Assembly (NCBI GenBank): GCA_002269645.1 | Contig: NIVC01001199.1 | Location: 124,001-188,000 of the forward strand | DNA from: Macrostomum lignano | Taxonomy: Eukaryota | DNA: 64,000 nucleotides | Direction: 5' to 3' | Shown here: one piece after another, positions 7,916 through 58,339 of the stretch | Numbering within the stretch: the stretch's first letter is position 1 | How the letters are laid out: each line of letters opens with the position of its first letter | Position numbers and translations under genes: made by a program | The notes under the pieces: generated by a model | Database searches by the model: none | What the model saw: only the letters and a program-made list of their open reading frames with translations | Told to the model about the DNA's origin: nothing

Positions 7916-10900
7916 TCAGACATAGTCTCCTCCGCGAGTCCCGGCTATTACAGTCTGAATGCTAACCCCGGACGCGTCGCTATCCATTGTCATGTAGAGC
8001 CGGCCCTCCTCATTGTCGCTATTATTGCCATCTTCATCACTAGAATCCGCCGCATAATTATTGTTGTCCTCTTCATCTTCAGCATCATCTACGGATAGTA
8101 AGCGAAGATTAACACCGGAGCGCAGCAGTCTGGGCGTCCGCTCGGCCGATTCTAAATCGCTGCTCCGCACGCTAGCCGAATCGTCGCCTAAATCGTCGAG
8201 ATTTCCGTCGTCGTCCTCTTTAGTGTCTACTCTGCAGGCAACAGCAACAGCGACAGGAGCCTCTGAGTCGGCTACAACGCAGTCGGTGATGGTCTCGCAC
8301 GATGACGATGTTGAATAATTGCCTACAGACGACCGGTTGTTAAGATCGCCCCTAGCAACTGGCACAGACGGACCTGTTGAATTGGACATTGCAGCCGCAA
8401 TGCACGCGAAATTAACTCGCGGCCTGGGCAAAATATCGTCGAACGGACGCCGGCGACCGGCTTCCTCATCCGGGAACAGGTAGTAGCAGTAGCCGAACAG
8501 GTCCGACAGGGGCCGGTTGGCGGGAGCGGGCGCCGCGCCGGAGCGCCGGTAGCCGCCGCCGGAGCTGCTTAACTCAGACAGAGATGAGGAAGCCACCGAT
8601 GCTAAAGATAAGGATTCGGGCGTTGCTATGGGCGCCTGGCCGTTCGAATACGGCATACTGGACGCTGACGGTGGCAAGCCGAAATTTCGAAGCACGGAGG
8701 CTGGCACAGTGTGCGAATGCGGCATCATCGACAGCAGGGCGGAGGCCGAAGCTGCCGCCGGTTCGGCTGTCGAGCTGATGATCATTTTGTCACCTGCGGC
8801 GGCGCCGTTGGAATCGATCGGCGCACCCATAATCGACGAAGAAAGAAGGTCGCTATCGATATCCGACTCTACCGACATTTGAGACGGCGACGAAGCCAAA
8901 TTGTTTTGCTGAACAATTGAATAATTTCTTTTGTCCTCTGTCTCGCTGCCGGCCCCGCAGTCTGTCTGAATCACTAGGCGTCGTTCGATCGAGGTCGCAG
9001 CAGCAGCGAAACTTTGCGCCGCTGGACGAAGTGTGCCTGGAGAGCCGCGCGGCGACGGCTGCAATCTGTCGTAGTCGGAGAGGACGGCGGCCAAGGCGAA
9101 CTGGGCGTAGCCAAGCGAGTGATCGCGCAGCATAGACGGAGAGGAGAGTATCTGTAGAAATGGGTAAACGGCATGAGCAACTATGACAGTCTCTTCAGGC
9201 TAAAAAGCCTCGTCACCTAATTAGTATTGAATAATTCTAACTTGCCTCGTCAAAATCGGTGCCGTCGGCTTTCAAAGCGTGAAACACCGGCTTGCCGTCG
9301 GTATTTCGAGCACGGACTACGTGCAGCACCCGGCCTGGCAACTGCAGAGCCGGATACGTCCTCGGCGACGCCGAGTCGGATGACGACATTGCGGCGTTGG
9401 TGTCGGCCAACTCGTCTCCAGGCGACGCATTCAGGGTATCCTCTGACTCTTGCAGTTGCTTGTGACGGCTATTGCAACAGCAGAGAGACAAACGGCGGCT
9501 GGCTGAAATTTATAGGAGAAAACCGCCCACTTCACTCCCTGATGACTCGGACACACCCACCTCCCACCCTGGAGACTCGGACGCACCCACCTCACCCAAC
9601 GACTCGGACACGCCCACCTCACTCCCTGATGACTCGGACACACCCACCTCCCACCCTGGAGACTCGGACACGCCCACCTCACTCCCTGATGACTCGGACA
9701 CGCCCACCTCACTCCCTGATGACTCGGACACGCCCACCTCACTCCCTGATGACTCGGACACGCCCACCTCACTCCCTGATGACTCGGACACGCCCACCTC
9801 ACTCCCTGATGACTCGGACACGCCCACCTCACTCCCTGATGACTCGGACACGCCCACCTCCCTCCCTGATGACTCGGACACGCCCACCTCACTCCCTGAT
9901 GACTCGGACACGCCCACCTCACTCCCTGATGACTCGGACACGCCCACCTCCCTCCCTGATGACTCGGACACGCCCACCTTCCTCCCTGATGACTCGGACA
10001 CGCCCAACTCACTCCCTGATCAGTGAGATCCTTACCAAGCCAATGTCCGCCAATGACGCTCCACCGGTGCGCTCGGCAGCCATTCAGAAGCCGCACCATT
10101 CTACGACGCAGCGTCGCAACCTGCGCCAAACCCAGTCGAGCGACGGCATCCCGTCCGATGACAACGGCGGTAGAGAACCGTCTGGCTAGCGTGGCCGCCT
10201 CCCGGCCGAGTAAACCACCGGGCGGCGCCAGAGCCGTTACGCGCGATCGGCTGGCCCAAGCCTCGCCGCGCGCCAGCGCCATCAAAGTGAGTATGACCGC
10301 GGCGCCGCCGCCAACGCCATGACCGGTGAGCATCACTTCAACGAAGCTCGACTCAACGTTTACATCGCCGGCAGCAGCCGCCGCAGTCTCCAGTACGCGA
10401 TGGCGCGCCAATTCGGCGCCTAGTTGAATAGCGGCGCCAATTGACCCCGCGTGGCCCAGCCACTCGGCGCCGCCGTCAACGCCGGCCGGAAGCGGTATCG
10501 GCGCAACTCCGCTCTCCAGCTCGCTCATTGAAGGCATCCTCAGCGTACTACTAGCGCTAGTAGTAGTAGACGAAGCGACAGTAACGCTTGGCGCTACAAC
10601 TACAAAAATATTCCGCGTGAAAGCGTCGTAGCCGGCAAAACAATTGCGGCTGGCGTAGGTTAACCGAAAGCGGGCGTCGCTAACGCCTTGTCGATTTAAA
10701 CTGTGCCGAACTGCGCCGGTGACGCTACGGTTGCCATGACAACAACAGGCTTCGGCAACCAGTATTAGCTTGGCGCAGTACAAAGCCAATTCAATTTCGA
10801 TTTGTCGGTCGGATTGGCCAAGTTGAAGAATCGCGTGGCCGAGTAGATAGGCCGGCCGGACATGTAGTCCAGCACGCGCTTGGAGCCCTCCTAGGTTCGG

Positions 10901-13900
10901 ACGGAGGATTAAAAGTACAAACAAATTACTCATAATACCTGGCGACAAAGCAATACTAAATTTTTTAGAAAATCTTACTTAGACTTCATTTTCAAGCCTC
11001 TTATCCTTGGCGCAATAAAAGTTTGACGTCTGAGAGCAACTATGAAGGCTATATAAAAACCAAAACTTAGGCCCTACAAAAGCCACGACAAAGGCCCTAT
11101 AAAAGCAACAGAAGGGTCCTAAAAGCTCACGCTAAGCTCCGATCGTTGCCGAAGGCGCTGTTGCCTTCGCAGCAGCACCAGGCCGGCGGCCAGGTCGGAG
11201 GCCACCAGATTCAGATCCGCGAACAGTGGCGTCAGTCGCAGCGCCGCGTCGGTCAGGCCGAACGGCAACGACGACGAAGTCGATCGTGAGGTAAACGGTG
11301 GGCAGCACAGCTGACGACGGCGTATGGACGTCGGCGGGGGCGGTGGAAGCGGTGGCAACTGGCCAGGCAGCTTCTTGTTGCTGTCGCAGCTGCCAAACAT
11401 TGCAGGCGTGCGGACGGGCGGGGTGATTGTGAGAACACTGATGACATGGATTGTAGCAACCACTGTTCTATCTTGTTTCTGTCTGTCTGTCTGTCTGTCT
11501 GTTTGTATGTCAGCAGAAGACTTTCTAATCGCACATTTCTCTCAACTCTGCATAGGAAATGACAATAGTTTCTTGAAATAGACTAACTTATCCCCGTCGG
11601 CGTCAATCAGGTTGTCATGGTAACAGCTGCGACTATCGATGAGCTTCTTTCCGCGGCGGTCATGTTTTCGCGCGCCCAACCGACGCCAGCGGCAAGAGTC
11701 GCAGCCGAGCCGATGCAGCAGGCAGATCAGAGCGCCGGAAATCAGCAGAGCCACTGTCCAATCGATTGCAGATACGGCTGACAGGAGAAGAGAAAAAACA
11801 GCGGGCGGTTGATTCACTTACTTACAGTAGAACCATACGCGTTTGAATGATAATTTGGAGGTCATATCAAATCTTGTCAAAGATATAATATTTCACGATT
11901 TTTTTCAATCTGAACCACCCCTCCTCTCATTCTCAATATTACCCTCTTCTCACTCTCAGTGTCTATCTCACCCTCTTCTCACTCTCAGTATCCATCTCAC
12001 CTTCTTCTCACTCTCAATGTCTATCTTACTGTCTGCTCACTCTCAGTGTCTATCTCATCCTCTTATGAGTGTCAATCTCAGCCTCTTCTCACTCTCCATC
12101 TCACCCTCTTCTCCCTCTCGGTGTCTATCTCACCCTCTTCTCACTCTCAGTATTCATCTCACCCTCTTCTCACTCTCAGTATTCATTTCACCCTCTTCTC
12201 ACTCTCAGTGTCTATCTCACCTTCTTCTCTCTCGGTGTCTATCTCACCCTCTTCTCACTCTCAATGTCCATCTCACCCTCTTCTCACTCTCAGTGTCTAT
12301 CTCACCCTCTTCTCACTCTCAGTGTCTATCTCACCCTCTTCTCACTCTCAGTGTCTATCTCACCCTCTTCTCACTCTCAGTGTCTATCTCACCCTCTTCT
12401 CACTCTCAGTGTCCATCTCACCCTCTTCTCACTCTCAGTGTCCATCTCACCCTCTTCTCACTCTCAGTGTCTATCTCACCCTCTTCTCACTCTCAGTGTC
12501 TATCTCACCCTCTTCTCACTCTCAGTGTCCATCTCACCCTATTCTCACTCTCAGTGTCTATCTCACCCTCTTCTCACTCTCAGTGTCTATCTCACCCTCT
12601 TCTCACTCTCAGTGTCTATCTCACCCTCTTCTCACTCTCAGTGTCTATCTCACCCTCTTCTCACTCTCAGTGTCCATCTCACCCTCTTCTCACTCTCAGT
12701 GTCCATCTCACCCTCTTCTCACTCTCAGTGTCTATCTCACCCTCTTCTCACTCTCAGTGTCTATCTCACCCTCTTCTCACTCTCAGTGTCCATCTCACCC
12801 TCTTCTCACTCTCAGTGTCTATCTCACCCTCTTCTCACTCTCAGTGTCTATCTCACCCTCTTCTCACTCTCAGTGTCTATCTCACCCTCTTCTCACTCTC
12901 AGTGTCTATCTCACCCTCTTCTCACTCTCAGTGTCTATCTCACCCTCTTCTCACTCTCAGTGTCTATCTCACCCTCTTCTCACTCTCAGTGTCTATCTCA
13001 CCCTCTTCTCACTCTCGGTGTCTATCTCACCCTCTTCTCACTCTCAGTGTCTATCTCACCCTCTTCTCACTCTCAGTGTCTATCTCACCCTCTTCTCACT
13101 CTCAGTGTCTATCTCACCCTCTTCTCACTCTCAGTGTCCATCTCACCCTCTTCTCACTCTCAGTGTCTATCTCACCCTCTTCTCACTCTCGGTGTCTATC
13201 TCACCCTCTTCTCACTCTCAGTGTCTCTCTCATCCTCTTCTCACTCTCAGTGTCTATCTCACCCTCTTCTCACTCTCAGTGTCCATCTCACCCTCTTCTC
13301 ACTCTCAGTGTCCATCTCACCCTCTTCTCACTCTCAGTGTCCATCTCACCCTCTTCTCACTCTCAGTGTCCATCTCACCCTCTTCTCACTCTCAGTGTCT
13401 ATCTCACCCTCTTCTCACTCTCAGTGTCTATCTCACCCTCTTCTCACTCTCAGTGTCTATCTCACCCTCTTCTCACTCTCAGTGTCTATCTCACCCTCTT
13501 CTCACTCTCAGTGTCTATCTCACCCTCTTCTCACTCTCAGTGTCTCTCTCACCCTCTTCTCACTCTCAGTGTCTATCTCACCCTCTTCTCACTCTCAGTG
13601 TCTATCTCACCCTCTTCTCACTCTCAGTGTCCATCTCACCCTCTTCTCACTCTCAGTGTCTATCTCACCCTCTTCTCACTCTCAGTGTCTCTCTCATCCT
13701 CTTCTCACTCTCAGTGTCTATCTCATCCTCTTCTCACTCTCAGTGTCTCTCTCATCCTCTTCTCACTCTCAGTGTCTCTCTCACCCTCTTCTCACTCTCA
13801 GTGTCCATCTCACCCTCTTCTCACTCTCAGTGTCCATCTCACCCTCTTCTCACTCTCAGTGTCTCTCTCATCCTCTTCTCACTCTCAGTGTCTATCTCAT

Positions 13901-15000
13901 CCTCTTCTCACTCTCAGTGTCTCTCTCATCCTCTTCTCACTCTCAGTGTCTCTCTCACCCTCTTCTCACTCTCTGTGTCTATCTCACCCTCTTCTCACTC
14001 TCAGTGTCCATCTCACCCTCTTCTCACTCTCAGTGTCCATCTCACCCTCTTCTCACTCTCAGTGTCTATCTCATCCTCTTCTCACTCTCAGTGTCTATCT
14101 CACCCTCTTCTCACTCTCAGTGTCTATCTCACCCTCTTCTCACTCTCAGTGTCCATCTCACCCTCTTCTCACTCTCTGTGTCTATCTCACCCTCTTCTCA
14201 CTCTCAGTGTCCATCTCACCCTCTTCTCACTCTCAGTGTCCATCTCACCCTCTTCTCACTCTCAGTGTCTATCTCACCCTCTTCTCACTCTCTGTGTCTA
14301 TCTCACCCTCTTCTCACTCTCAGTGTCTATCTCACCCTCTTCTCACTCTCAGTGTCCATCTCACCCTCTTCTCACTCTCAGTGTCTATCTCACCCTCTTC
14401 TCACTCTCAGTGTCCATCTCACCCTCTTCTCACTCTCAGTGTCTATCTCACCCTCTTCTCACTCTCAGTGTCTATCTCACCCTCTTCTCACTCTCAGTGT
14501 CCATCTCACCCTCTTCTCACTCTCAGTGTCCATTCTATTCTCAACCTGACGCGCGAGTATATATTGTCAATCTGCAGACACTAAGAGTCTCTAACAGTCT
14601 CCCCGTCAAAGCTACATGTAGCAAAGCCTCATCAGCCCAGCCGGCGCTTACCAGCCAATAGGCGCACAGACACTGATCGATCAGAACAGTCCTTTAGCTG
14701 GGAAATCTTCTCCGGCAAGTGTTGAAGCAGCGACCAAGGCAGCAGTAGCAGTGCAAGGACTGGCAGGCTGATCAGATGCCAGGCAATTTCCAATACTAGG
14801 AGAACTGCAATAAACAGCAGAGTCAAGTAGCCAGCATACACAAAATGCGCATAAATTAGATTATGGGGAATACTTCTGGGCGGAATAGACAGCAAAACGG
14901 CTAGATAGATGAATAGATCCAGGCTAGAAATGCTCGAGGCCCAGCCAAGGAGAACCAAGGAAAATCTAGAAGAGCAACAACTCTTCCCCGACTCAAACAT
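7916..15000 (-). CDS. sn1-diacylglycerol lipase-like (lipase class 3, 4-TM N-terminus) protein, probably catalytically dead; exons ~15000-14652, 11777-11588, ~11466-11131, ~10892-10036, 9502-9246, 9151-7916
   Basis: DAGL-family motifs in order: VRLL|AAVSAIDW (TM3), LFADLNLVASDLAAGLVLLRRQQR, WLGHAG, GHGVGGGAAVIL, APPGGLLG, VIGRDAVARLGL, LQLPGRVLHVV, FDE|ILSSPSMLRDH. Phases match at 14652/11777, 10036/9502 and 9246/9151. The junctions around 11466-10892 are not fully resolved, and the start ATG at 15000 is inferred. Confidence 0.85.
9520..10022. repeat. 30-bp minisatellite in DAGL-like intron
   Basis: GACTCGGACACGCCCACCTCACTCCCTGAT, ~16 copies. Confidence 0.95.
11905..14535. repeat. 29-bp minisatellite (~2.6 kb) in DAGL-like intron 1
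   Basis: TCTCACCCTCTTCTCACTCTCAGTGTCTA; the source of the spurious 800-900 aa ORFs. Confidence 0.97.
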
Positions 15001-15439
15001 CCAATTTTCAGACAACTATAGGCCGACTGCAAGTTCTTGTGTGTGCAGCCTACAGTTGTCAAAAAACTGGGATGGCTATGGACGGGGGGAAGAGTTGCAA
15101 CTCCAGGCTCTGGTTCAACATGGGATGCGGTATGCAAATCATTTCAAGCGCAACGCTGGCGGGCAAGAAGAGGGAATTGGAAAGTCGGGAGGGCAGCAGA
15201 TGCACGCGAATCTATCTTCTATCTATAAGAGTACTAATTCGGATCAGCGGTGCTCAAACATAACTAGTGGAGGATGGCTGCTCACTTCCTAGACCAAATT
15301 GTGATACTCGACAGTCAGTCTGTGACTGATAAGCAACTTTCTGCTGTCCAATCTCTCTTATCTTCTCTCCCATCGTCTTACTTGCCTCCTCACCCTGTCT
15401 CCCCACTTCTACTCTCTCAATACGCTATCTCTCAATACC

Positions 15440-16625
15440 CTCACTAGCTCACCCTATCCTCTACTCTCTCACCCTATCCTCTACTCTCTCACCCTATCCT
15501 CTCTACCCTCTCACCCTATCCTCTCTACTCTCTCACCCTATCCTCTACTCTCTCACCCTATCCTCTCTACTCTCTCACCCTATCCTCTACTCTCTCACCC
15601 TATCCTCTCTACTCTCTCACCCTATCCTCTACTCTCTCACCCTATCCTCTCTACTCTCTCACCCTATCCTCTACTCTCTCACCCTATCCTCTCTACTCTC
15701 TCACCCTATCCTCTACTCTCTCACCCTATCCTCTCTACTCTCTCACCCTATCCTCTACTCTCTCACCCTATCCTCTCTACTCTCTCACCCTATCCTCTAC
15801 TCTCTCACCCTATCCTCTACTCTCTCACCCTATCCTCTACTCTCTCACCCTATCCTCTCTACTCTCTCATCCTATCCTCTACTTTCTCACCCTAACCTCT
15901 CTACTCTCTCACCCTATCCTCTACTCTCTCACCCTATCCCCTCTACTCTCTCACCCTATCCTCTACTCTCTCACCCTATCCTCTCTACTCTCTCACCCTA
16001 TCCTCTACTCTCTCACCCTATCCTCTCTACTCTCTCACCCTATCCTCTCTACTCTCTCATCCTATCCTCTACTCTCTCACCCTATCCTCTACTCTCACCC
16101 TATCCTCTACTCTCTCACCCTATCCTCTCTGCTCTCTCACCCTATCCTCTACTCTCTCACCCTAACCTCTCTACTCTCTCACCCTATCCTCTACTCTCTC
16201 ACCCTATCCCCTCTACTCTCTCACCCTATCCTCTACTCTCTCACCCTATCCTCTCTACTCTCTCACCCTATCCTCTACTCTCTCACCCTATCCTCTCTAC
16301 TCTCTCACCCTATCCTCTCTACTCTCTCATCCTATCCTCTACTCTCTCACCCTATCCTCTACTCTCACCCTATCCTCTACTCTCTCGCCCTATCCTCTAC
16401 TCTCTCACCCTATCCTCTACTCTCTCACCCTATCCTCTACTCTCTCACCCTATCCTCTACTCTCTCACCCTATCCTCTCTACTCTCTCACCCTATCCTCT
16501 CTACTCTCTCACCCTATCCTCTACTCTCTCACCCTATCCTCTACTCTCCCACCCTATCCTCTCTACTCTCTCACCCTATCCTCTACTCTCTCACCCTATC
16601 CTCTACTCTCTCACCCTATCCTCTA
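15440..16625. repeat. 20/22-bp pyrimidine-rich minisatellite
   Basis: CTCTCACCCTATCCTCTACT with +CT variants. Confidence 0.95.
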
Positions 16626-17179
16626 ATTTCTTACCGTACCATCTCTGCTCTCTTTCTTCTACTCTTTTTTCTCTCTACCTCTACTCATTTATCTTTTCAA
16701 CCCTCCCTTCTTCACAAAAAAATCTTTTTTAGTCCCGTCTTTCAACCTTCCACGTTCCTCAGCAACGATGTAACCTAAGCAAACGGTTTTTCAGGGCGGC
16801 TACCTTCGCCATTTCGCTTATTACTAGACGCGGGCAAAGCAGCTTTCCCAGGAGCTTTCTCTGACCGTGTCCTAAACTGTGCCAACCCAACCCCTTACAC
16901 CCGCAGCAGAGGCTGGCTGGCTGCTGGCTGACCCGCGGGATTCGAAAGAAGCCACAAACAAGCAAATGAGGAAGAAACTGCAGAGGGGAACATTTGACTG
17001 GCTACACACTTTCCCTTTGCGATTCGCTTTTGTCCTCGGCTACATCCGCCGGCAAGTCCAACACTGGCCATGTCTACACCCCAGACTTCTGTGGAGACAT
17101 TTGGGGATAGAGCGACAAAGGATTGAGCAACAGAGCAATCATACAGATGGTATGGCCAAAACGGATACTAAAAACTAAA

Positions 17180-18109: not shown

Positions 18110-19310
18110 GATGAAGAGGGCGTAGAGAAAGAGAGTGATACAACGGTATGAAGAGAGAGGGTGTGAAGAAAATAGGAAGAGAGGATGTGGAGGGTACAGG
18201 GAGTGTGTGAAGAGGGTAGAAAGAGAGTGTAGAGGTAGATAGGGTGTGAAGGGATAGGGGAAGAGGGTGTGAAGGGGGTATGGAAAGAGGGTGTGAAAGG
18301 GTAGGTAAAGAGGGTGTGAAGGGGTAGGGAGAGAGGGTGTGAAGGAGTAGACGGAGAGAGTTGAGAAAGGAGTAGAGAGAGGGTGTGAAGGGAGTGTGAA
18401 TGGGTTAGGGAGGGTGCGAAGGGGTAGGGAGAGAGGGTGTGAAGGGTTAGGGAGAGAGGGTGTGAAGGGGTGGGGTAGGGAGGGAGGGTGTTAAGGGGTA
18501 GGGAGGAAGGGTGTTAAGGGGTAGGGAGGAAGGGTGTTAAGGGGTAGGGAGGAAGGGTGTTAAGGGGTAGGGAGGGAGGGTGTGAAGGGGTAGGGAGGAA
18601 GGGTGTTAAGGGGTAGGGAGGAAGGGTGTTAAGGGGTAGGGAGGAAGGGTGTTAAGGGGTACGGAGGAAGGGTGTGAAGGGGTAGGGAGGAAGGATGTGA
18701 AGGGGTAGGGAGGAAGGGTGTGAAGGGGTAGGGAGGAAGGGTGTTAAGGGGTAGGGAGGAAGGGTGTGAAAGGGTAGGGAGGAAGGGTGTGAAGGGGTAG
18801 GGAGGAAGGGTGTGAAGGGGTAGGGAGGAAGGGTGTGAAGGGGTAGGGAGGAAGGGTGTTAAGGGGTAGGGAGGAAGGGTGTTAAGGGGTAGGGAGGAAG
18901 GGTGTGAAGGGGTAGGGAGGAAGGGTGTGAAGGGGTAGGGAGGAAGGGTGTGAAGGGGTAGAGAGGAAGGGTTTGAAGGGGTAGGGAGGAAGGGTGTGAA
19001 GGGGTAGGGAGGAAGGGTGTGAAGGGGTAGGGAGGAAGGGTGTGAAGGGGTAGGGAGGAAGGGTGTGAAGGGGTAGGAAAAGAGGGTGTGAAGAGGTAGG
19101 GAAAGAGGGTGTGAAGCGGTAGGGAAAGAGGGTGTGAAGGGGTAGTCAGGGAGGGTGTGAAAGGGTAGGGAAAGAGAGTGTGAAGGGGTAGTCAGGGAGG
19201 GTGTGAAGGGGTAGGCAGGGAGGGTGTGAAGGGGTAGGAAAAGAGGGTGTGAATGGGATAGGAAAAGAGGGTGTGAATGGGATAGTGAGTGTGTGAAGGG
19301 TTAGGGTAGA
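18110..19310. repeat. 23-bp G-rich minisatellite
   Basis: GGGTGTGAAGGGGTAGGGAGGAA. Confidence 0.93.
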
Positions 19311-20324: not shown

Positions 20325-20707
20325 ACAGCCTGGTCTTCACCAGCCGAGTCATGGCCGTGCCACATCGATGCCATCGACGCCCCAGACTCCGCGTATCGCC
20401 AGCGACGCCTTTCTCGTTGTCGTTATCATCGTCAACGCAGCAGCAGCAGCAGCATCGCCAACAACTGGCAATCACACAGGCTGCTTCTAGTAGACAGCAA
20501 GACAGCAATAACAATATTCTGAAGCCAACTGTAGCAGCAGACACAATTGCGGCAATTTTGCATCGGGAAACAATTAGCGACTCTCCTAGACTCGATGGGG
20601 TTGTTGCATTGCTCCCGGCAGCAGCCAGATAGGAGTGGGAGTGGTACAAGCTGACATGCCGTTGCGGCGACGCTAACAGCGATAGAAGCGACGAAAGTCC
20701 AGCTAGC
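20325..20707 (-). CDS. Orphan exon candidate: hydrophobic segment followed by poly-Cys string (SCWRCCCCCC) and acidic patch
   Basis: Strong acceptor TTTTCTTTGATCTAACCACAG at 20708, donor GTGAGT after 20325, open frame between them, GC-rich non-repetitive sequence flanked by satellite. Partner exons were not identified. Confidence 0.4.
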
Positions 20708-23864: not shown

Positions 23865-25110
23865 CGTCTCTTCTCTCCTCTTTTCTCTACTTTCGTCTCA
23901 TCTCATCTCTCCTCATCTCCTCCTCTCCTCTCTCATCCCTTCTCTCTCATTTCTCTCCTCTCTCATTTCTTCTCTCCTCTCTCATTTCTTCTCTCTCCCC
24001 TCTTTTCTCTACTTTCGTCTCATCTCATCTCTCCTCATCTCCTCCTCTCCTCTCTCATCTCTCTCCTCTCTCATTTCTTCTCTCCTCTCTCATTTCTTCT
24101 CTCCTCTCTCATTTCTTCTCTCCTCTCTCATTTCTTCTCTCCTCTCTCATTTCTTCTCTCCTCTATCATTTCTCTCCTCTCTCATTTCTTCTCTCCTCTC
24201 TCATTTCTTCTCTCTCCCCTCTTTTCTCTACTTTCGTCTCATCTCATCTCTCCTCATCTCCTCCTCTTCTCTCTCATCCCTTCTCTCTCATTTCTCTCCT
24301 CTCTCATTTCTTCTCTCCTCTCTCATTTCTTCTCTCTCCCCTCTTTTCTCTACTTTCGTCTCATCTCATCTCTCCTCATCTCCTCCTCTCCTCTCTCATC
24401 TCTCTCCTCTCTCATTTCTTCTCTCCTCTCTCATTTCTTCTCTCCTCTCTCATTTCTTCTCTCCTCTCTCATTTCTTCTCTCCTCTATCATTTCTTCTCT
24501 CCTCTATCATCTCTCTCCTCTCTCATTTCTTCTCTCCTCTCTCATTTCTTCTCTCCTCTCTCATTTCTTCTCTCCTCTCTCATTTCTTCTCTCCTCTCTC
24601 ATTTCTTCTCTCCTCTCTCATTTCTTCTCTCCTCTATCATCTCTCTCCTCTCTCATTTCTTCTCTCCTCTCTCATTTCTTCTCTCTCATTTCTTCTCTCT
24701 CATTTCTTCTCTCCTCTCTCATTTCTTCTCTCCTCTCTCATTTCTTCTCTCCTCTCTCATTTCTTCTCTCCTCTCTCATTTCTTCTCTCCTCTCTCATTT
24801 CTTCTCTCCTCTCTCATTTCTTCTCTCTCCCCTCTTTTCTCTACTTTCGTCTCATCTCATCTCTCCTCATCTCCTCCTCTCCTCTATCATCTCTCTCCTC
24901 TCTCATTTCTTCTCTCCTCTCTCATTTCTTCTCTCCTCTCTCATTTCTTCTCTCCTCTCTCATTTCTTCTCTCCTCTCTCATTTCTTCTCTCCTCTCTCA
25001 TTTCTTCTCTCCTCACTCTCTCATTTCTTCTCTCTCCCCTCTTTTCTCTCCTCTCTCATCTCTTCTCTACTCTCTCCTCTCATCTCCTCTCTGCTCCGTT
25101 CCCTCTCTCT
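23865..25110. repeat. 19-bp CT-rich minisatellite with higher-order variants
   Basis: TTCTTCTCTCCTCTCTCAT, with a recurring CTACTTTCGTCTCATC block. Confidence 0.93.
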
Positions 25111-26773
25111 CTTCCTCGCTCATCTGGCCCGCCGCCATGAGCTGGATTATCCATCTGGCCCTGAGGCGCTAAGATATTACGAGCTCAAGGCATAGAAATG
25201 ACAATACACTTCTTCGTCATCAATGATATCGACAAAAAATCAAAGCCCAGAATACTGATACTCACTGCAACAGATGACAAGCCAGCAAGGCAATGGATGG
25301 CAAGGTCAAATCGTCCGAGCTGAAGCAGCACAACCGATTGAATAGTACTAGACCTGGCATAGTACTAAACCTTGTCAAGTGGCGGGCGCGTTAGCTGGTG
25401 GCATTTCCGCCGTACAGGAAAGTCAGCCTCGCATTGGACCCCAGGCTGTAAAAATGATAATAAAATAATACTAAATGTTGGCCAGATTACCGAGTAAAAT
25501 ATTATTAAAGAATTGATGAACAGGGAAATAAAGAATATTTTAATTCCCTATTTTTTATTACAGACAAGCTGGCAAAGAGGCGAAACAACACAGAAAGATC
25601 TATGCGGTGGTACACGGTATATATAAGCAGATATATCTTTGGCTATATTTGCCTAGCGACAAGGTGACGGACGCTCCTGCGCACAAGTAGTCCGCCCTGG
25701 AATAACCCCTTCCCCTCCACCGCAAGTAGGTTGGGGTGGGATAGGGAGGAAGCCAAGCAAAGCGGATTGGCCTACGACAGGAAGGGAGACAGAGGAGGGC
25801 TGCTGTAGCTAGCCAGCCTGTATTGGGGATTTGCACTGCACTGCAATAGACGCGTATAGCGAGAGGCCAAGGGAGCCAAGAAGAGTCAGTTGCGTATGTC
25901 GTATTAAAAACCAACAATAAAGCAGCCAGCCAATGACGACGCAAGACGGAGAGAGCTTACAGAATTTCTCTACTGTAATCCTTTGCCCTGCGTCTCATAC
26001 ATTGTCCCTATTCCCTTACTACAGAGGTGGGGGGGGGGGGCTAGGAGCTACGCTGCAACGCTGCAGTACAAGTCGCCTACACAACAGCGTCAATTAGCAA
26101 TCGCCATGCACTGGTTATAACCTCTTTTGCCGGCGGGCTGGGCCAGGTCACACAGGCCGAAAATCAAAAGAGGCGGCAAAACTAAAAGGATGAGACGAGT
26201 GGACAATAAATTACCCCCACCCTCCCTCTTTCTGCTGCTACCCGTGCCTTCTAATCACCAGAAGGTCTAAGTAGAGAGAAGCGACCTCGAGGTCACATAC
26301 GCTAATACTTCCCGTCACCCTCCCAAATCCTCAGACTGTGCAAGCGCCAACGCATTGGTCAATAAACGAGTCCCTGAAGCATTTTAACTGAACTGAACCC
26401 ACTTGTGAACATTCATTGACGTTTAAAAACATTAATTTATTTCACATGTACTTTGCCAGTTTTTTCAAGTTTTGATCGAACTGTCACGACTTCTCCATGG
26501 TGCAATAAGATTACCGGTAGTGAACTTGTATTGTAGCTTGTAAAATCCAAATCATTTTATTAGGGAATCTACAGTCTGTTCCGGTAGTAAATCAGATTAG
26601 GCGAAGGAATCAAGCTATAGCTCGTAAATACAACCCGACCCGATTGTGCCAAGAAAAACAGCAATATGATTGTCTTTTTATAATCTGGGCACGCGGACTG
26701 CTTTTGTCAACTTAAAGATTTAGAAGTAGCACTATTAAAGCGCAAGAGAAAAAAATACGAGCTATTTCGCAAG

Positions 26774-34303: not shown

Positions 34304-41008
<6,705 letters not shown>

Positions 41009-48185: not shown

Positions 48186-48920
48186 ACTCTACGTTCGGTC
48201 TACGACTTTTTCGTAGCTCCCACTTGGCGCCGCGTTTACGTCGCGGAGGGGAAACACGCCCAATGGGGGTGTACGAAGAGCGCCATGTAAAGTCAAGCAA
48301 TTACACTTCTCCCCAAAAACGAAAAAGCTCAAAAATGCGGATTAAAAGGATAAGGATTAAGGAATAAAACATGAAAAGTAAAAATACACTTGGCTCAGTT
48401 CGCAGCAGCAATTACGCGTTAAACTCTGTAGCTGATAGGCTTGTCCTTGGCCGCTCTTGGGTGCGGCCTCTCCGCAATGCCGCGCTCTGGCGAGGCGGCG
48501 CCAGCGTCGGCTTCCGGTGGCGGGTCCTCGGCCACTGTCAGAGGCCGAATGTGCGTCAGTCGCCTTGCCGCAGGATGTAGGAATCGCCTAGCTTGTCGGT
48601 GACGGTCCAGGGTTCGAGCTCGAAAGGCGTCTGCGTTTTCGTGCGTCTCGTCTACTTGCGGAGAACCGCCGAACCCGGCTCGACGCTGGCCGCCTTGGCC
48701 CTCCTGGAGCGGTTGAAACCTGCTGCCATCTGCTTGGCCGCGTGACGCTTTGCAAGGTCGGCTCGGTCGTGCTGCACGGGCTGCGTTGGTTGAATTGACG
48801 GGAGGCCGTCGTTGAGAGCTCGGCCCATGAGTAGTTCAGCTGGTGCTACGCCGGATGCCGAGTGCGGAGTGACGCGATGAGCGAGCAGCCAGTCGTCTAG
48901 TGCAGTACGCCAGTTGCGTC
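48185..48920 (-). mobile_element. Ty3/Gypsy LTR retrotransposon remnant: integrase C-terminus, polypurine tract and start of 3' LTR
   Basis: WRTALDDWLLAHRVTPHSASGVAPAELLMGR, continuing in frame through TAG/TGA stops (KTQTPFELEPWTVTDKLGDSY). PPT GGGGAGAAG at 48314-48306 is followed immediately by TGTAAT (LTR start, 48305). Confidence 0.8.
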
Positions 48921-51512
48921 CTTCCGCTTCAGCATTCCGGGCTTCTGCACTATCCGCAAGGACCGTAAAACCGCCCGCTGCGACCCGAACGTTAAAGGCG
49001 GCGGCCTGCTCTTCTTTATCCGGCAAGTCATTCCGTTCAATAAACCCCGAGGATGGTCTGGCGGAACCACCGAAGGCTGCAGAATTTCGATCAGCACCTC
49101 GGCCAGACAAAAACTTGTCATCTCCAACATCTGCAGCACAAGCTCAGTGCCTGGTCGACTGGTGCAACTCCGTGGACTACCGCATCCTGAACTCAGGGGA
49201 ACACACTTAAGTTGACAGGCGCACCGGACGGGCTAGTGCTCCCGATCTCACCATCGCTAGTCAATCAGTGGCCGACCTCTTTAAATGGCAACCGCTCACC
49301 GAGCTCGGCTCCGATCACCAACCCATCCTGGTGATTGTCCCGGAATCCCGTGAAACCCTGAGCACTGCGCCTCGCTTCAGCTGGTCTTGGAAGAAAGCGA
49401 ACTGGACTGCTTACCAGACCCTGCTCTCCGAGGACGCCGACCGCCTCAATGGCGGCTCCATTAAGAAACAGATTGCCAGGCTCTGCTCGGGCATGCTTAA
49501 AGCAGCCAAATCTGCTATCCCGCTAAAAAAAGTCTCTGCCAAAAACAAGCCATACTGGGATGAAGAACTTACTGAACTTCGCGACACTCGGAACCGGCTT
49601 TGGGAATCTGGCGCCCATCCTGGTGAGTGGCTCGAAAAAAGTCACGAACTGTCCAAACTCTGTACCGAAAAGAAAGCCGAATTCTGGAAGGAGTACATCA
49701 ATAAAATGTCCGACTCTGCCGACCCAAAACAAGTCTGGAGGACTGTCAAGTGCCTCAGCAACGGCAAACAACAAGCTCCTCCCAACGAATCTCTCGTTGT
49801 TGATGGTCGAGAACTGCGCACGGACAAGGAAAAGGCTAACGCCTTTGGCCGCTATTGCGAAAACATCAGCACTCTGAAACACTCGGCGGTGGACCGCAAG
49901 GTCAAAGTGGCCACGTCCCGTCGCCTGGCCCACTACTCCACCGACGACAACCTTTAATGCCGTGACTTCACCCCTGGTGAGCTGAAACGGGCCATTGGCA
50001 AACTTGACCCAAGCAAAAAATGTGGGCCCGACGAAATCGAAGCTGCCTTCTTCATCCACCTGCCGGACTCTTGGATGACGGCCTGGCTGGCCGTCTTCAA
50101 CCGTTGCTGGCGTACCGGACACTTCCCTGGAGTCTGGAAAAAGGCCGTTATCGTCCCCCTGCTAAAGGACGGAAAGGACCCCAAAGACCGCGGTAGCTAC
50201 AGGCCTGTCAGCCTCACCTCCATCTGCGGGAAGATCCTCGAACGGCTTATCCTCGATCGCCTCTTTCGCTGGCTCGAGCTCCACCACAACATCATTCAGC
50301 CCTGCCAAGCCGGTTTTCAACGTAGTCGCGGCTATGAAGAGCAAATCACCCGCCCCGTTCAGTCTATTCAAGATGAATGGGAGAAACACCCGCACTTGAA
50401 AACTGTGGCCGTCCTCATCGACTGCTCTCGCGCCTTCGACCGTGTTTGCGCGCTCGCCTTATTGGTCGCATGATGGACGAAGGTTCACCAGCTTTCTCGA
50501 AGGCAGGCAGATCGCTGTGCGGGTCGGCTCCTCGCTTGGGAAATGGCGCAGACGGAGGGCGCCGTCAGCTCGCCTGCCCTCTTCCTCATCGATGTTAATA
50601 AGTGGTCCGGTCACACCGTGCCTCTCGTTGACTACAGTGGCATTGCAGACGATCTCGCCCTCTGGAGCACGGGCCGGAACCTCCCGGAAATCCAGGCTCG
50701 CCTCCAATCCGCCCTGCAGCTCGTCGAGTAATGGGCCGCTCATCTGCGTATCGACATCAACCCTTCTAAAACTGAGGGATGCCTCTTCTCTCGTGACAGA
50801 TCTGACCGTCAACGCAACCTCAGCCTCACCCTCCGGGGCCAACAGATTCCTTTCAAGCAGGAGATTAAGTTTCTCGGAATCTGGATTGACCAATGTCTGC
50901 AATTCGAAAAGCAAACTGACTCCGTCCGGGAAAGAATGCTTCGCAGAGCTGCCATTCTTCGTGCCCTAGCCCACCGTGAATGGGGCTGGGATCGCAAGCT
51001 GCTGCTGCGAGTCTACCGGGCTCTTGTCGAATCCATCGTGTGGCACGCCGCCGCGGCCTGGACGCCCTGGCTATCTGCGACCCCAGCCCAGCGTGAGGCC
51101 CTCCGGGTTGTCACTGGTTTCCCCCGCTCGACACCGGTAGAGGTCATCTACCTCTTGAAAGAGGTACCTCTTGAATTTTCTCTTCTATTCTCCCCCCGCT
51201 TATTTATTATCAAGAGGAGGCCCTTTAGGACCTCCTAGTCTCGCAGGTCCGCGCCGGGCACTGTCCTGCATCGATCTACTACCGCAACCGCACTGGCATT
51301 GAGGTCGGGGGCAACTGCCGTCTTTGCGCGGAAGAGGTCGATCGGTACCACCTTCTCAACTGCCCGGCCCTGGACGTCCAACGCCGTACTCACGGCATTA
51401 CCGAAATGTGTCAACTCGCTCGCGCAGACGTAGTGGCGCTTCTCCTTGGGGCCATCGGTTGGTGTCCCCTTTAGGAGAGGCTCACCGCATACAACAACAA
51501 CAACAACAACAC
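48917..51512 (+). mobile_element. Decayed, 5'-truncated non-LTR retrotransposon (APE endonuclease + RT + C-terminal CCHC, I/Jockey-group-like) with (CAA)n tail
   Basis: FSIPGFCTIRKDR...GGGLLFFIR and PDLT...LGSDHQPI (APE); WKKAVIVPLLKDGKD...SYRPVSLTSICGKILER, DCSRAFDRV, IADDLALW (RT); CRLCAEEVDRYHLLNCPAL (~51315-51375); (ACA)n at ~51490-51510. Multiple frameshifts, stops and deletions. Confidence 0.9.
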
Positions 51513-57655: not shown

Positions 57656-58339
57656 CTGGGGGTGTTGCATAAAGGCGTGTATGATGGTGGAGTGCGCAAA
57701 GCGAAAGTATTCCGGGTATTCCGGGAAATCGATAAATGACGGAAATGTTAAAAACACGTTGCCCAGTGAACTTTGCATACTTGCCAGGTAAAATTTGATG
57801 CTGAAAAGTCTTTTTAATCCCTAATAAAACTTCAAAAACACAGTTCTATACTTAAAGAGCTGCTTTTATTCTTCAAAATGAAAGCACTTGATTGACAAAG
57901 TCCCCCTTTCTTAACTCAACACAGCCTTCACGATGCCTTATGGAGTTTTACCTCGAAAAAATCATTGGACTTCTTTTATTGCACTTGACTTTGCTCCTTT
58001 CTATAGCCCTTGCGAATCTTACGAGTTACTTGTGACTATTCTCTATACATGTAGCTATACGCTTGTGACATGACAGATTCAAAAGTACCACGTGGGGGGA
58101 TGACGATTGATTTTGTCTGGCCAAGTAACCGAATTAAGTCTGCTGGAGAAGAAGCTGCTCCGCGGTCTGCGCAGCCACTGGCCATCCATGGGAAAGGCCG
58201 AGTGCTTGGCCAAACTTCAAATTGTCCACCGAATTTGCATTCTGCCAGTTTAACCCGGGGTTCCGCTGAAGCCCGGCGTCCCCTGAGACTTGAATTGATC
58301 AACCAATCATTCATGATACAGTTTCTCACGCACTTCAGC

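Follow-up and report, generated by a model that had tools for sequence, protein, structure and literature searches.

A putative non-catalytic paralogue of diacylglycerol lipase alpha in Macrostomum lignano

Introduction

Does a diacylglycerol lipase (DAGL) gene that has lost its catalytic Ser persist as a maintained gene, or is it a duplicate in decay? This question is raised by a locus on the minus strand of scaffold NIVC01001199.1 of the Macrostomum lignano assembly Mlig_3_7, from which a stretch of 64 kb (the window, to whose positions all coordinates refer) was analyzed. Comparison of window positions 1–20537 with the scaffold sequence (GCA_002269645.1) showed agreement at all 20,537 bases, and proteins encoded near the gene matched M. 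lignano entries at 100%. Diacylglycerol (DAG) lipases produce 2-arachidonoylglycerol and shape diacylglycerol signalling, and in a comparison with 122 representative homologues the catalytic Ser was lost only in the product of this locus. Our search of the literature on diacylglycerol lipase and pseudoenzymes found no description of a dead DAGL, and none naming the locus (BOX15_Mlig033520g1 in GenBank).

An initial annotation of the window, made from the letters alone, had proposed an intact, spliced but catalytically inactive DAGL-like paralogue at 10036–10900. In this study, the alignment and the tree indicate that the gene is a fast-evolving paralogue of DAGL-alpha, hereafter the altered copy. 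We consider that it probably represents an expressed, non-catalytic pseudoenzyme derived from DAGL-alpha and maintained now or until very recently, with a rough probability of 0.55.

Results

Loss of the nucleophile and the oxyanion-hole motif

The DAGL-alpha-like gene spans at least 7916–15000, and its upstream limit probably extends to 25360. The 3' part has been annotated as the hypothetical protein PAA70905.1 (664 amino acids; UniRef name, Fungal lipase-like domain-containing protein), and sequence comparison indicated that the translation of the window with the inferred splice sites equals this protein. The exon at 10036–10890, with which the interval of the initial annotation coincides within 10 nucleotides, encodes the linker end and the greater part of the class-3 lipase domain, in which the altered RGT and GHSLG motifs and the triad Asp are found. 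An exhaustive HMMER search yielded 550 matches, and 122 retrieved sequences of at least 400 amino acids were aligned with MAFFT.

In class-3 lipases, the Ser of GxSxG is the nucleophile and RG[ST] supplies the oxyanion hole. Direct reading of the minus-strand codons gave V-M-L-T-G-H-G-V-G-G-G-A around the nucleophile elbow (G-H-G-V-G, 10310–10324), in which the codon at 10318–10316 is GGC (Gly). The corresponding column contained Ser in 122 of the 122 homologues and Gly in this gene product alone. Neighbouring positions of the elbow were also changed, namely L to V (L in 120 of the 122 others) and the Ala of the following G-A-G to Gly. The oxyanion-hole motif was replaced by A-P-S (10586–10594) within FVVVAPSVTV, which is followed by the Ser/Thr-rich ASSTTTSASSTL; the three columns contained R in 115, G in 117, and T or S in 116 of the homologues. 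Both losses had been pointed out in the initial annotation, and the direct reading and the alignment bear them out.

The triad Asp (GAT, 10148–10150, in VVIGRDAV) and the triad His (CAC, 9119–9121, in SPSMLRDH) were retained, and both aligned with conserved columns (D in 121 and H in 118 of the 122 homologues). Their retention had been claimed beforehand and stands as to the residues; the His, however, lies outside the interval to which it had been assigned, in the last exon, two exons downstream.

When 48 strongly conserved columns were compared, the altered copy had mismatches at 15, whereas the other sequences had a median of 2.5 and a maximum of 11. These mismatches were concentrated from the AAYGW block through RGT..TDL to the elbow, and the PPGG, G[KR]D, PPG, and M..DH blocks were retained. 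Such a cluster of substitutions is not a one-base change. Furthermore, A0A1I8FS10, a gene model of the older M. lignano assembly ML2, likewise reads GHGVG (GHGVGGG), although ML2 was assembled from the same PacBio reads as Mlig_3_7 and is hence a second assembly and not second data. These findings agree with the initial view that a single-base sequencing error is very unlikely here.

Since both the Ser nucleophile and the oxyanion-hole motif are absent, hydrolysis of DAG by the serine-hydrolase mechanism of the family should not be possible in the altered copy, judging from what is known of GxSxG hydrolases. The match to the Pfam family Lipase_3 (PF01764) was marginal, with a score of 22.7 bits against a cut-off of 22 and with only profile positions 63–135 matched, as compared with 31.8 bits for an active M. 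lignano paralogue (see below) and 50.7 bits for the DAGL-alpha of Lingula.

Relationship to DAGL-alpha and the C-terminal tail

As the initial annotation had supposed, the gene is a DAGL homologue: the best matches outside Macrostomum were DAGL-alpha proteins, those named at the top being from Lingula, Glandiceps, sea urchin, and scallop (HMMER expectation values, E, of 1e-29 to 1e-24). A neighbour-joining tree placed the altered copy within the clade containing these proteins, and the top matches and the tree together indicated that the catalytic domain and linker are closer to DAGLs than to other lipases.

Downstream of the triad His, a tail of about 390 amino acids was found. It contains APIATPESLS (8606–8635, minus strand), which is identical in the DAGL-alpha of Lingula and was detected as the same motif in about 30 retrieved DAGL-alpha-type proteins by a regular-expression census, and GYCYY(L) (8480–8494, minus strand), which is common to the DAGL-alpha of a hemichordate (P0007), that of a sea urchin (P0009), and several further homologues. 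The order of the two motifs is retained with a spacing similar to that in the homologues, and each occurs once in the six frames of the window. By BLAST, the motifs taken singly gave E of 0.05 to 5; their significance is accordingly drawn from the census and the six-frame uniqueness, and not from BLAST. The long tail with both motifs assigns the product to the DAGL-alpha subtype.

PPxxF is the Homer-binding consensus, and inspection of the tail by eye found no such motif. DAGL-alpha is distinguished from DAGL-beta by a longer tail, which binds Homer proteins (preprint 10.1101/2025.04.17.649373), and CaMKII binds DAGL-alpha and phosphorylates two of its serines (PMC8503962).

Active DAGL paralogue of M. 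lignano

The initial annotation had suggested looking for an active paralogue elsewhere in the genome, and one was found (PAA53202.1, PAA51934.1, and PAA89490.1; P0161 and P0017 are its annotated copies). It contains VVAIRGTLS, LLTGHSLGAG, GKD, and SPSMLRDHLP, and showed mismatches at 3 of the 48 conserved columns. In the neighbour-joining tree, it was the nearest neighbour of the altered copy. The two proteins were 47–58% identical in the C-terminal half of the lipase domain. Identity to the outgroups in the segment flanking the His was 0.50 for the altered copy and 0.52 for the active one, and in the N-terminal half of the lipase domain, which is the most degraded, it was 0.23 versus 0.33.

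The active paralogue (NIVC01003114.1, gene at 10001–16905) reaches its stop codon 25 residues past the His and has no alpha tail, and both tail motifs were absent from all frames of its 26.9-kb locus. A tandem repeat of about 14 PEA[VN]QST units was observed in its regulatory-loop region, between RGT and GHSLG, and the unit count was unequal between P0017 and P0161. In clustering at 90%, the altered copy had one annotated member, whereas the active gene has three GenBank entries.

Predicted fold

The lipase domain was modelled with AlphaFold2 using a 40-sequence alignment, which gave a predicted local distance difference test score (pLDDT) of 72, with 85–95 in the core, and a predicted template modelling score of 0.72. 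A strand (155–161) followed by a helix (163–177) brackets the Gly at the nucleophile position, with pLDDT of 83–93. When the model was used as the query for Foldseek, the plant proteins EDS1, PAD4, and SAG101 were retrieved first, followed by the Rhizomucor and Rhizopus lipases (E, 1e-5 to 1e-4); a sequence search of the PDB gave no match at E up to 1. Retention of the class-3 lipase fold (the fungal-lipase-type alpha/beta-hydrolase fold) is thus predicted for the altered copy.

Exon structure

Exons were placed by homology and with the aid of two older ML2 gene models, P0001 and P0002; all of those described here lie on the minus strand. The probable first coding exon (25267–25360) encodes MPGLVLFNRLCCFSSDDLTLPSIALLACHLL, the counterpart of the conserved N-terminus of DAGLs, and a GTGAGT donor lies directly behind it. 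This exon (MPGLVLFNRLCCFSSDDLTLP...) was matched by tblastn with the N-termini of 10 DAGL-alpha proteins (best E, 1.4e-5) and by positions 1–30 of a profile built from 34 DAGL N-termini (E, 4e-8). As for its join to the region around 15000, the canonical-looking acceptors were out of phase, and a single weak acceptor (AAGAG|T) was in phase. Between these two exons, the open reading frame (ORF) at 20649–19753 was considered as a candidate for a missing membrane exon. Its product has a hydrophobic helix, a CCCCCC run, and, in SNAT, an N-glycosylation-like site; the resemblance to the N-terminus of the active paralogue was loose, and profile searches gave no significant match.

The next exon (14652–15000) encodes hydrophobic, transmembrane-type helices (...FSLVLLGW..., YLTLLFIAVLLVLEIAWHLISLPVLALLLLPW), recognized in a hydropathy scan, and ends at the donor G|GTAAGC. 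Its 5' limit is uncertain and may be set by the ATG at 15000 or by an acceptor within a few bases of it, and its product is identical to the N-terminal part of P0001 and P0002. The junction from 14652 to 11777 was confirmed by P0001, which reads ...VRLLAAVSAIDW. The cytosolic linker begins in the exon at 11588–11777 (acceptor TGTCAG, donor GTTAGT), which also encodes the final hydrophobic helix and whose junction ...DADGD-N-CDSNKK matches P0001. A 48-nucleotide intron just upstream of 11777, suggested by the donor-like TACT|GTAAGT at about 11825, was ruled out by the direct join in P0001. The N-terminal exon and the hydrophobic helices of these two exons may together represent the four-helix membrane domain of DAGLs.

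The conserved DAGL linker, RRRQLCC...FADLNLVASDLAAGLVLLRRQQ, is encoded at 11131–11389 (donor AGC|GTGAGC, phase 0), as found by tblastn with the active paralogue and other DAGLs. The lipase exon described above is bordered by the acceptor ACCTAG|GAGGGC (10891/10890) and the donor CTTG|GTAAGG (10036/10035). It is followed by an exon (9246–9502) encoding a variable insert and the strand ...LQLPGRVLHVVR...TDFDE, with the donor GAG|GCAAGT of a GC-AG intron, and by the last exon (7916–9151), which encodes ILSSPSMLRDH with the triad His and then the tail up to the stop codon at 7918–7916.

The five introns (donor..acceptor: GTAAGC..CAG, GTTAGT..CAG, GTGAGC..TAG, GTAAGG..CAG, and GCAAGT..CAG) all have usable sites, and their junctions are in phase. 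The last two junctions are exactly those used by PAA70905.1, including the GC-AG intron, in agreement with the initial claim that the gene is spliced. The GC-AG intron (9245–9152) and the unusual GTTAGT donor of the intron at 11587–11390 are both backed by existing gene models. Tandem Repeats Finder detected a 29-bp repeat of about 90 copies (11941–14530), which fills the 2874-nucleotide intron between the exons ending at 14652 and beginning at 11777, and a 30-bp repeat of 16.7 copies (9524–10020), which fills the 533-nucleotide intron after the lipase exon. Because the latter repeat is open in all frames, a mechanical ORF of 505 amino acids runs through it.

One-base shortfall in the assembled gene

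The whole reading frame had been described as intact in the initial annotation. However, inside its interval, at an A-run (GAC AAA TCG, 10801–10803, minus strand), the assembled sequence is one base short and the ORF is split: the upstream frame reads ...NPTDK, and IEIELALY... follows in another frame. From the preceding exon, which has a phase-0 end, the coding frame continues into the lipase exon as EGSKRVLDYMSGRPIYSATRFFNLANPTDKSKLNWLCTAPS* (EGSKRVLDYMSGRPIYSATRFFNLANPTDK...) and there hits a stop. As assembled, the upstream ORF terminates at ...KSKLNWLCTAPS*, and the lipase part (IEIELALYCAKL...) sits in a frame different from that of the N-terminal exons. Both frames were homologous to DAGL, the first matching ADVQAFMSGRPILSSTRFL of the active paralogue, and NPTD[K/R]IEIELALY was uninterrupted in the ML2 models (NPTDKIEIELALY in P0002 and NPTDRIEIELALY in P0001). 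These results indicate that the window is one base short at this site. The exon lengths from 15000 to 7916 total 3146 nucleotides, which leaves a remainder of 2 on division by 3, and the addition of one base gives an open frame of 1048 codons from the ATG at 15000. Of the proposal of an intact, spliced, catalytically inactive paralogue, the splicing and the loss of catalytic residues therefore hold, and the intactness does not in the sequence as assembled.

Because the frameshift splits the ORF, PAA70905.1 starts at an internal Met (10537), the first after the shift, and is without the first third of the lipase domain as well as the putative membrane domain; presumably, TransDecoder took the longest ORF downstream of the frameshift. 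No coding sequence is annotated for about 380 upstream codons (15000–10538 and 25360–25267), which encode the membrane helices, the linker, and the beginning of the lipase domain.

The shortfall may have arisen as a consensus error, since near-identical copies in a polyploid genome are difficult to assemble, or it may be a lesion of this copy only. The older ML2 assembly of the same reads had many frame breaks at the locus that are absent from Mlig_3_7 (P0001, P0002, and P0004), suggesting that indel errors are common at this DAGL-like locus. Furthermore, P0001 and P0002 differ at the very base concerned (R versus K); where near-identical copies vary in this way, a collapsed consensus can lose a base, and we infer that this may have happened here.

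An alternative acceptor bypassing the frameshift (GCCAAG|CTA, at about 10779) was rejected as the main form, since homology to DAGL is found in both exon frames and the older models are uninterrupted at the site. We also observed that P0001 and P0002 both stop at ...GVSDARF, 45 codons past the frameshift site, where Mlig_3_7 remains open; a contig end, another indel, or a model artefact may account for this.

Open frame and transcription

Downstream of the frameshift site, the reading frame ran for 751 codons without a stop, and upstream of it for 296. In the other two frames, there were 34 and 34 stops after the site and 12 and 11 before it; shuffled sequences gave a mean of 25 stops and a minimum of 15. 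Besides the missing base, no lesion was found across about 1050 codons.

The Mlig_3_7 annotation was based on transcript evidence and TransDecoder only, and the GC-AG junction in PAA70905.1 fits transcript evidence and not an ab initio prediction. Spliced RNA of the gene very probably exists.

Surroundings of the gene

Very regular tandem repeats with units of 19–35 bp fill introns and intergenic DNA of the window. They include the two described above and those at 15448–16653, 18241–19289, and 23868–25091, and many of them are open in all frames, giving mechanical ORFs of up to 913 amino acids that are not genes. The downstream neighbour (4681–366, minus strand) is annotated on the scaffold as an arginyl-tRNA synthetase (Pfam tRNA-synt_1d and DALR_1). 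The name of A0A1I8FS10 is misleading because this ML2 model fuses the arginyl-tRNA synthetase with the DAGL-like gene.

At 57699–57229 and 55258–53924 (minus strand), ORFs of a rhodopsin-family G protein-coupled receptor were found, which match Pfam 7tm_1 at positions 1–84 (E, 5e-15) and 86–260 (E, 1e-26), respectively, and probably belong to a single gene interrupted by an intron of about 2 kb. Reverse-transcriptase ORFs, fragmented and broken across frames, lie at 49268–50969 (plus strand) and 48652–49110 (minus strand), with a match to Pfam RVT_1 at 50075–50470 (E, 8e-11), and look like a decayed copy of a non-long-terminal-repeat retrotransposon. The region 35267–38425 contains overlapping long ORFs on both strands, of which the plus-strand one is rich in Arg, Glu, and Leu and coiled-coil-like in look; these ORFs partly overlap an apparent further short-unit repeat, and no Pfam match was found for 35267–35935.

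Discussion

In this study, we examined a DAGL-alpha paralogue of M. lignano that has lost the Ser nucleophile (GHSLG to GHGVG), the oxyanion-hole motif (RGT to APS), and most of the conserved residues in the N-terminal half of the lipase domain. The Asp and His and the long alpha-type tail with its two motifs are retained, together with the predicted class-3 fold and, apparently, the MPG..F......SDDL N-terminus and the membrane helices. Such a product would be a membrane-anchored, DAGL-shaped protein in which the tail and the surface of the fold are the useful parts, and its part in lipid signalling might be that of a scaffold or regulator, possibly exercised alongside the tail-less active paralogue. 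The initial annotation had put forward the roles of DAG sensor, scaffold, or dominant-negative regulator as conceivable ones. Maintenance of the gene as a pseudoenzyme by selection is suggested indirectly by the open frame, the splice sites, the tail motifs, and the conservation of the segment flanking the His.

Several observations weigh against a maintained and expressed pseudoenzyme. The ORF is broken as assembled, and Mlig_3_7, a Canu assembly of PacBio reads, was polished by Pilon with Illumina and RNA-seq reads, such that the missing base may be a real lesion. An open frame and tail motifs would also persist in a recently dead pseudogene. The spliced RNA was deduced from the method of annotation and not seen in reads. 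The catalytic domain was less conserved throughout than that of the active copy, and the mean Kimura distance to the other sequences was 1.49 as compared with 1.14 for the active copy; such excess divergence is also expected under relaxed selection. The sister relation to the active paralogue had a bootstrap value of 114/200 (57%). Finally, word-index protein searches for orthologues, extra copies, and RNA-derived fragments gave only P0001 and P0002, and this index is blind here, having missed PAA70905.1 itself; a look-up of P0001 and P0002 by exact product yielded no contig.

The strongest alternative, which we regard as possible but tentative, is a young, decaying pseudogene, that is, a redundant DAGL-alpha duplicate beside the active paralogue that lost its catalytic residues under relaxed selection and is now frameshifted, with residual transcription and no function. 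M. lignano has been described as a recent hidden polyploid, in which redundant copies are expected to decay. Along with the shortfall that persisted despite polishing with Illumina and RNA-seq reads, this explanation is favoured by the divergence at the conserved columns (15 of 48), which was the highest of all, by a terminal branch that was the second-longest of 107 (0.369; median, 0.217), and by the single annotated copy in its cluster against three entries for the active gene. Nevertheless, one lesion in about 1050 codons is little for so deep a divergence when the other frames contain 11–34 stops, all the splice sites are intact, and the short tail motifs are exactly kept. In addition, P0001 and P0002 read through the frameshift site, and frame breaks of the indel type, common at this locus in the older assembly, are absent from the newer one.

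An enzyme with a non-canonical mechanism, in which water activated by the Asp and His or another nucleophile would act, possibly on another substrate, is improbable in our view. The retained Asp and His, a His region as conserved as that of the active paralogue, and a fold confidently predicted around the active site are compatible with it, but retention of Asp and His is common among dead alpha/beta hydrolases. Moreover, the elbow (T-G-H-G-V-G-G-G) has no Ser, Cys, or Thr in place of the nucleophile, and the oxyanion-hole motif has been lost as well; degradation is also greatest in the N-terminal half of the lipase domain, which supplies the remainder of the pocket. That the Ser codon is an artefact and the true gene encodes an active lipase with AGC and GHSVG is scarcely credible: GGC is one transition from AGC, but that base has no bearing on the L-to-V and A-to-G changes, on the missing RGT, or on the other lost conserved residues, the ML2 gene model also reads GHGVGGG, and Pilon polishing with Illumina reads corrects substitutions well.

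If the altered copy is a maintained pseudoenzyme, the tail motifs and the C-terminal half of the fold would stand out as the parts of DAGL-alpha whose function does not depend on catalysis. As no more than a duplicate in decay, it would be one of the usual by-products of polyploidy. Either way, PAA70905.1 is an N-terminally truncated ORF call arising from a one-base assembly problem. RNA interference is routine in M. lignano. A review describes the species as a laboratory model in which transgenesis is established.

The alpha tail was found only on the altered copy and the chemistry only on the tail-less copy, and this distribution suggests a further idea, speculative and rather unlikely as it stands, that DAGL-alpha was split in the Macrostomum lineage. 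The tail-less copy would keep the chemistry and the altered copy the regulatory or targeting tail, positioning or tuning the active lipase. If true, the split would be a lipase/pseudo-lipase pair, analogous to ATGL with CGI-58, inside the pathway producing 2-arachidonoylglycerol.

Compared with DAGLA and the invertebrate DAGL-alpha proteins (Lingula XP_013421661.1), the altered copy shares the N-terminus, the membrane helices, the linker ...DL.VVPSD..AGL.LLR, the class-3 lipase domain with the PPGG, GKD, and SP.M..DH blocks, and the long C-terminal tail with APLA.PE.LS and GYCYY, whereas it is without the Ser nucleophile, RGT, and the TDL block, and is changed at 15 of the 48 near-invariant columns. 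With the active DAGL of the same species, it has in common the lineage-typical strings MSGRPI.S.TRF, LTGH, GLAQ, and SPSMLRDH; the active protein differs in having RGT, GHSLG, 3 mismatches at the 48 columns, and the Pro/Glu/Ser-rich repeat insertion in the regulatory loop, and in the absence of the alpha tail.

Among proteins of other families, EDS1, PAD4, and SAG101 of plants were the best structural matches to the predicted fold. Their lipase-like domains act through protein-protein and small-ligand binding and not through hydrolysis, and SAG101 is without the triad. The homology is, however, limited to the fold (11–16% identity), and these proteins are soluble, plant-borne, and equipped with an EP domain. 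In ABHD5 (CGI-58) and the neuroligins, the nucleophile Ser is replaced (by Asn in ABHD5 and by Gly in the neuroligins) and the fold is kept. They belong to other alpha/beta-hydrolase families, and their function and conservation have been established experimentally, whereas the altered copy is known from its sequence. A role of the kind proposed here for the altered copy is known from ABHD5, a regulator of an active lipase.

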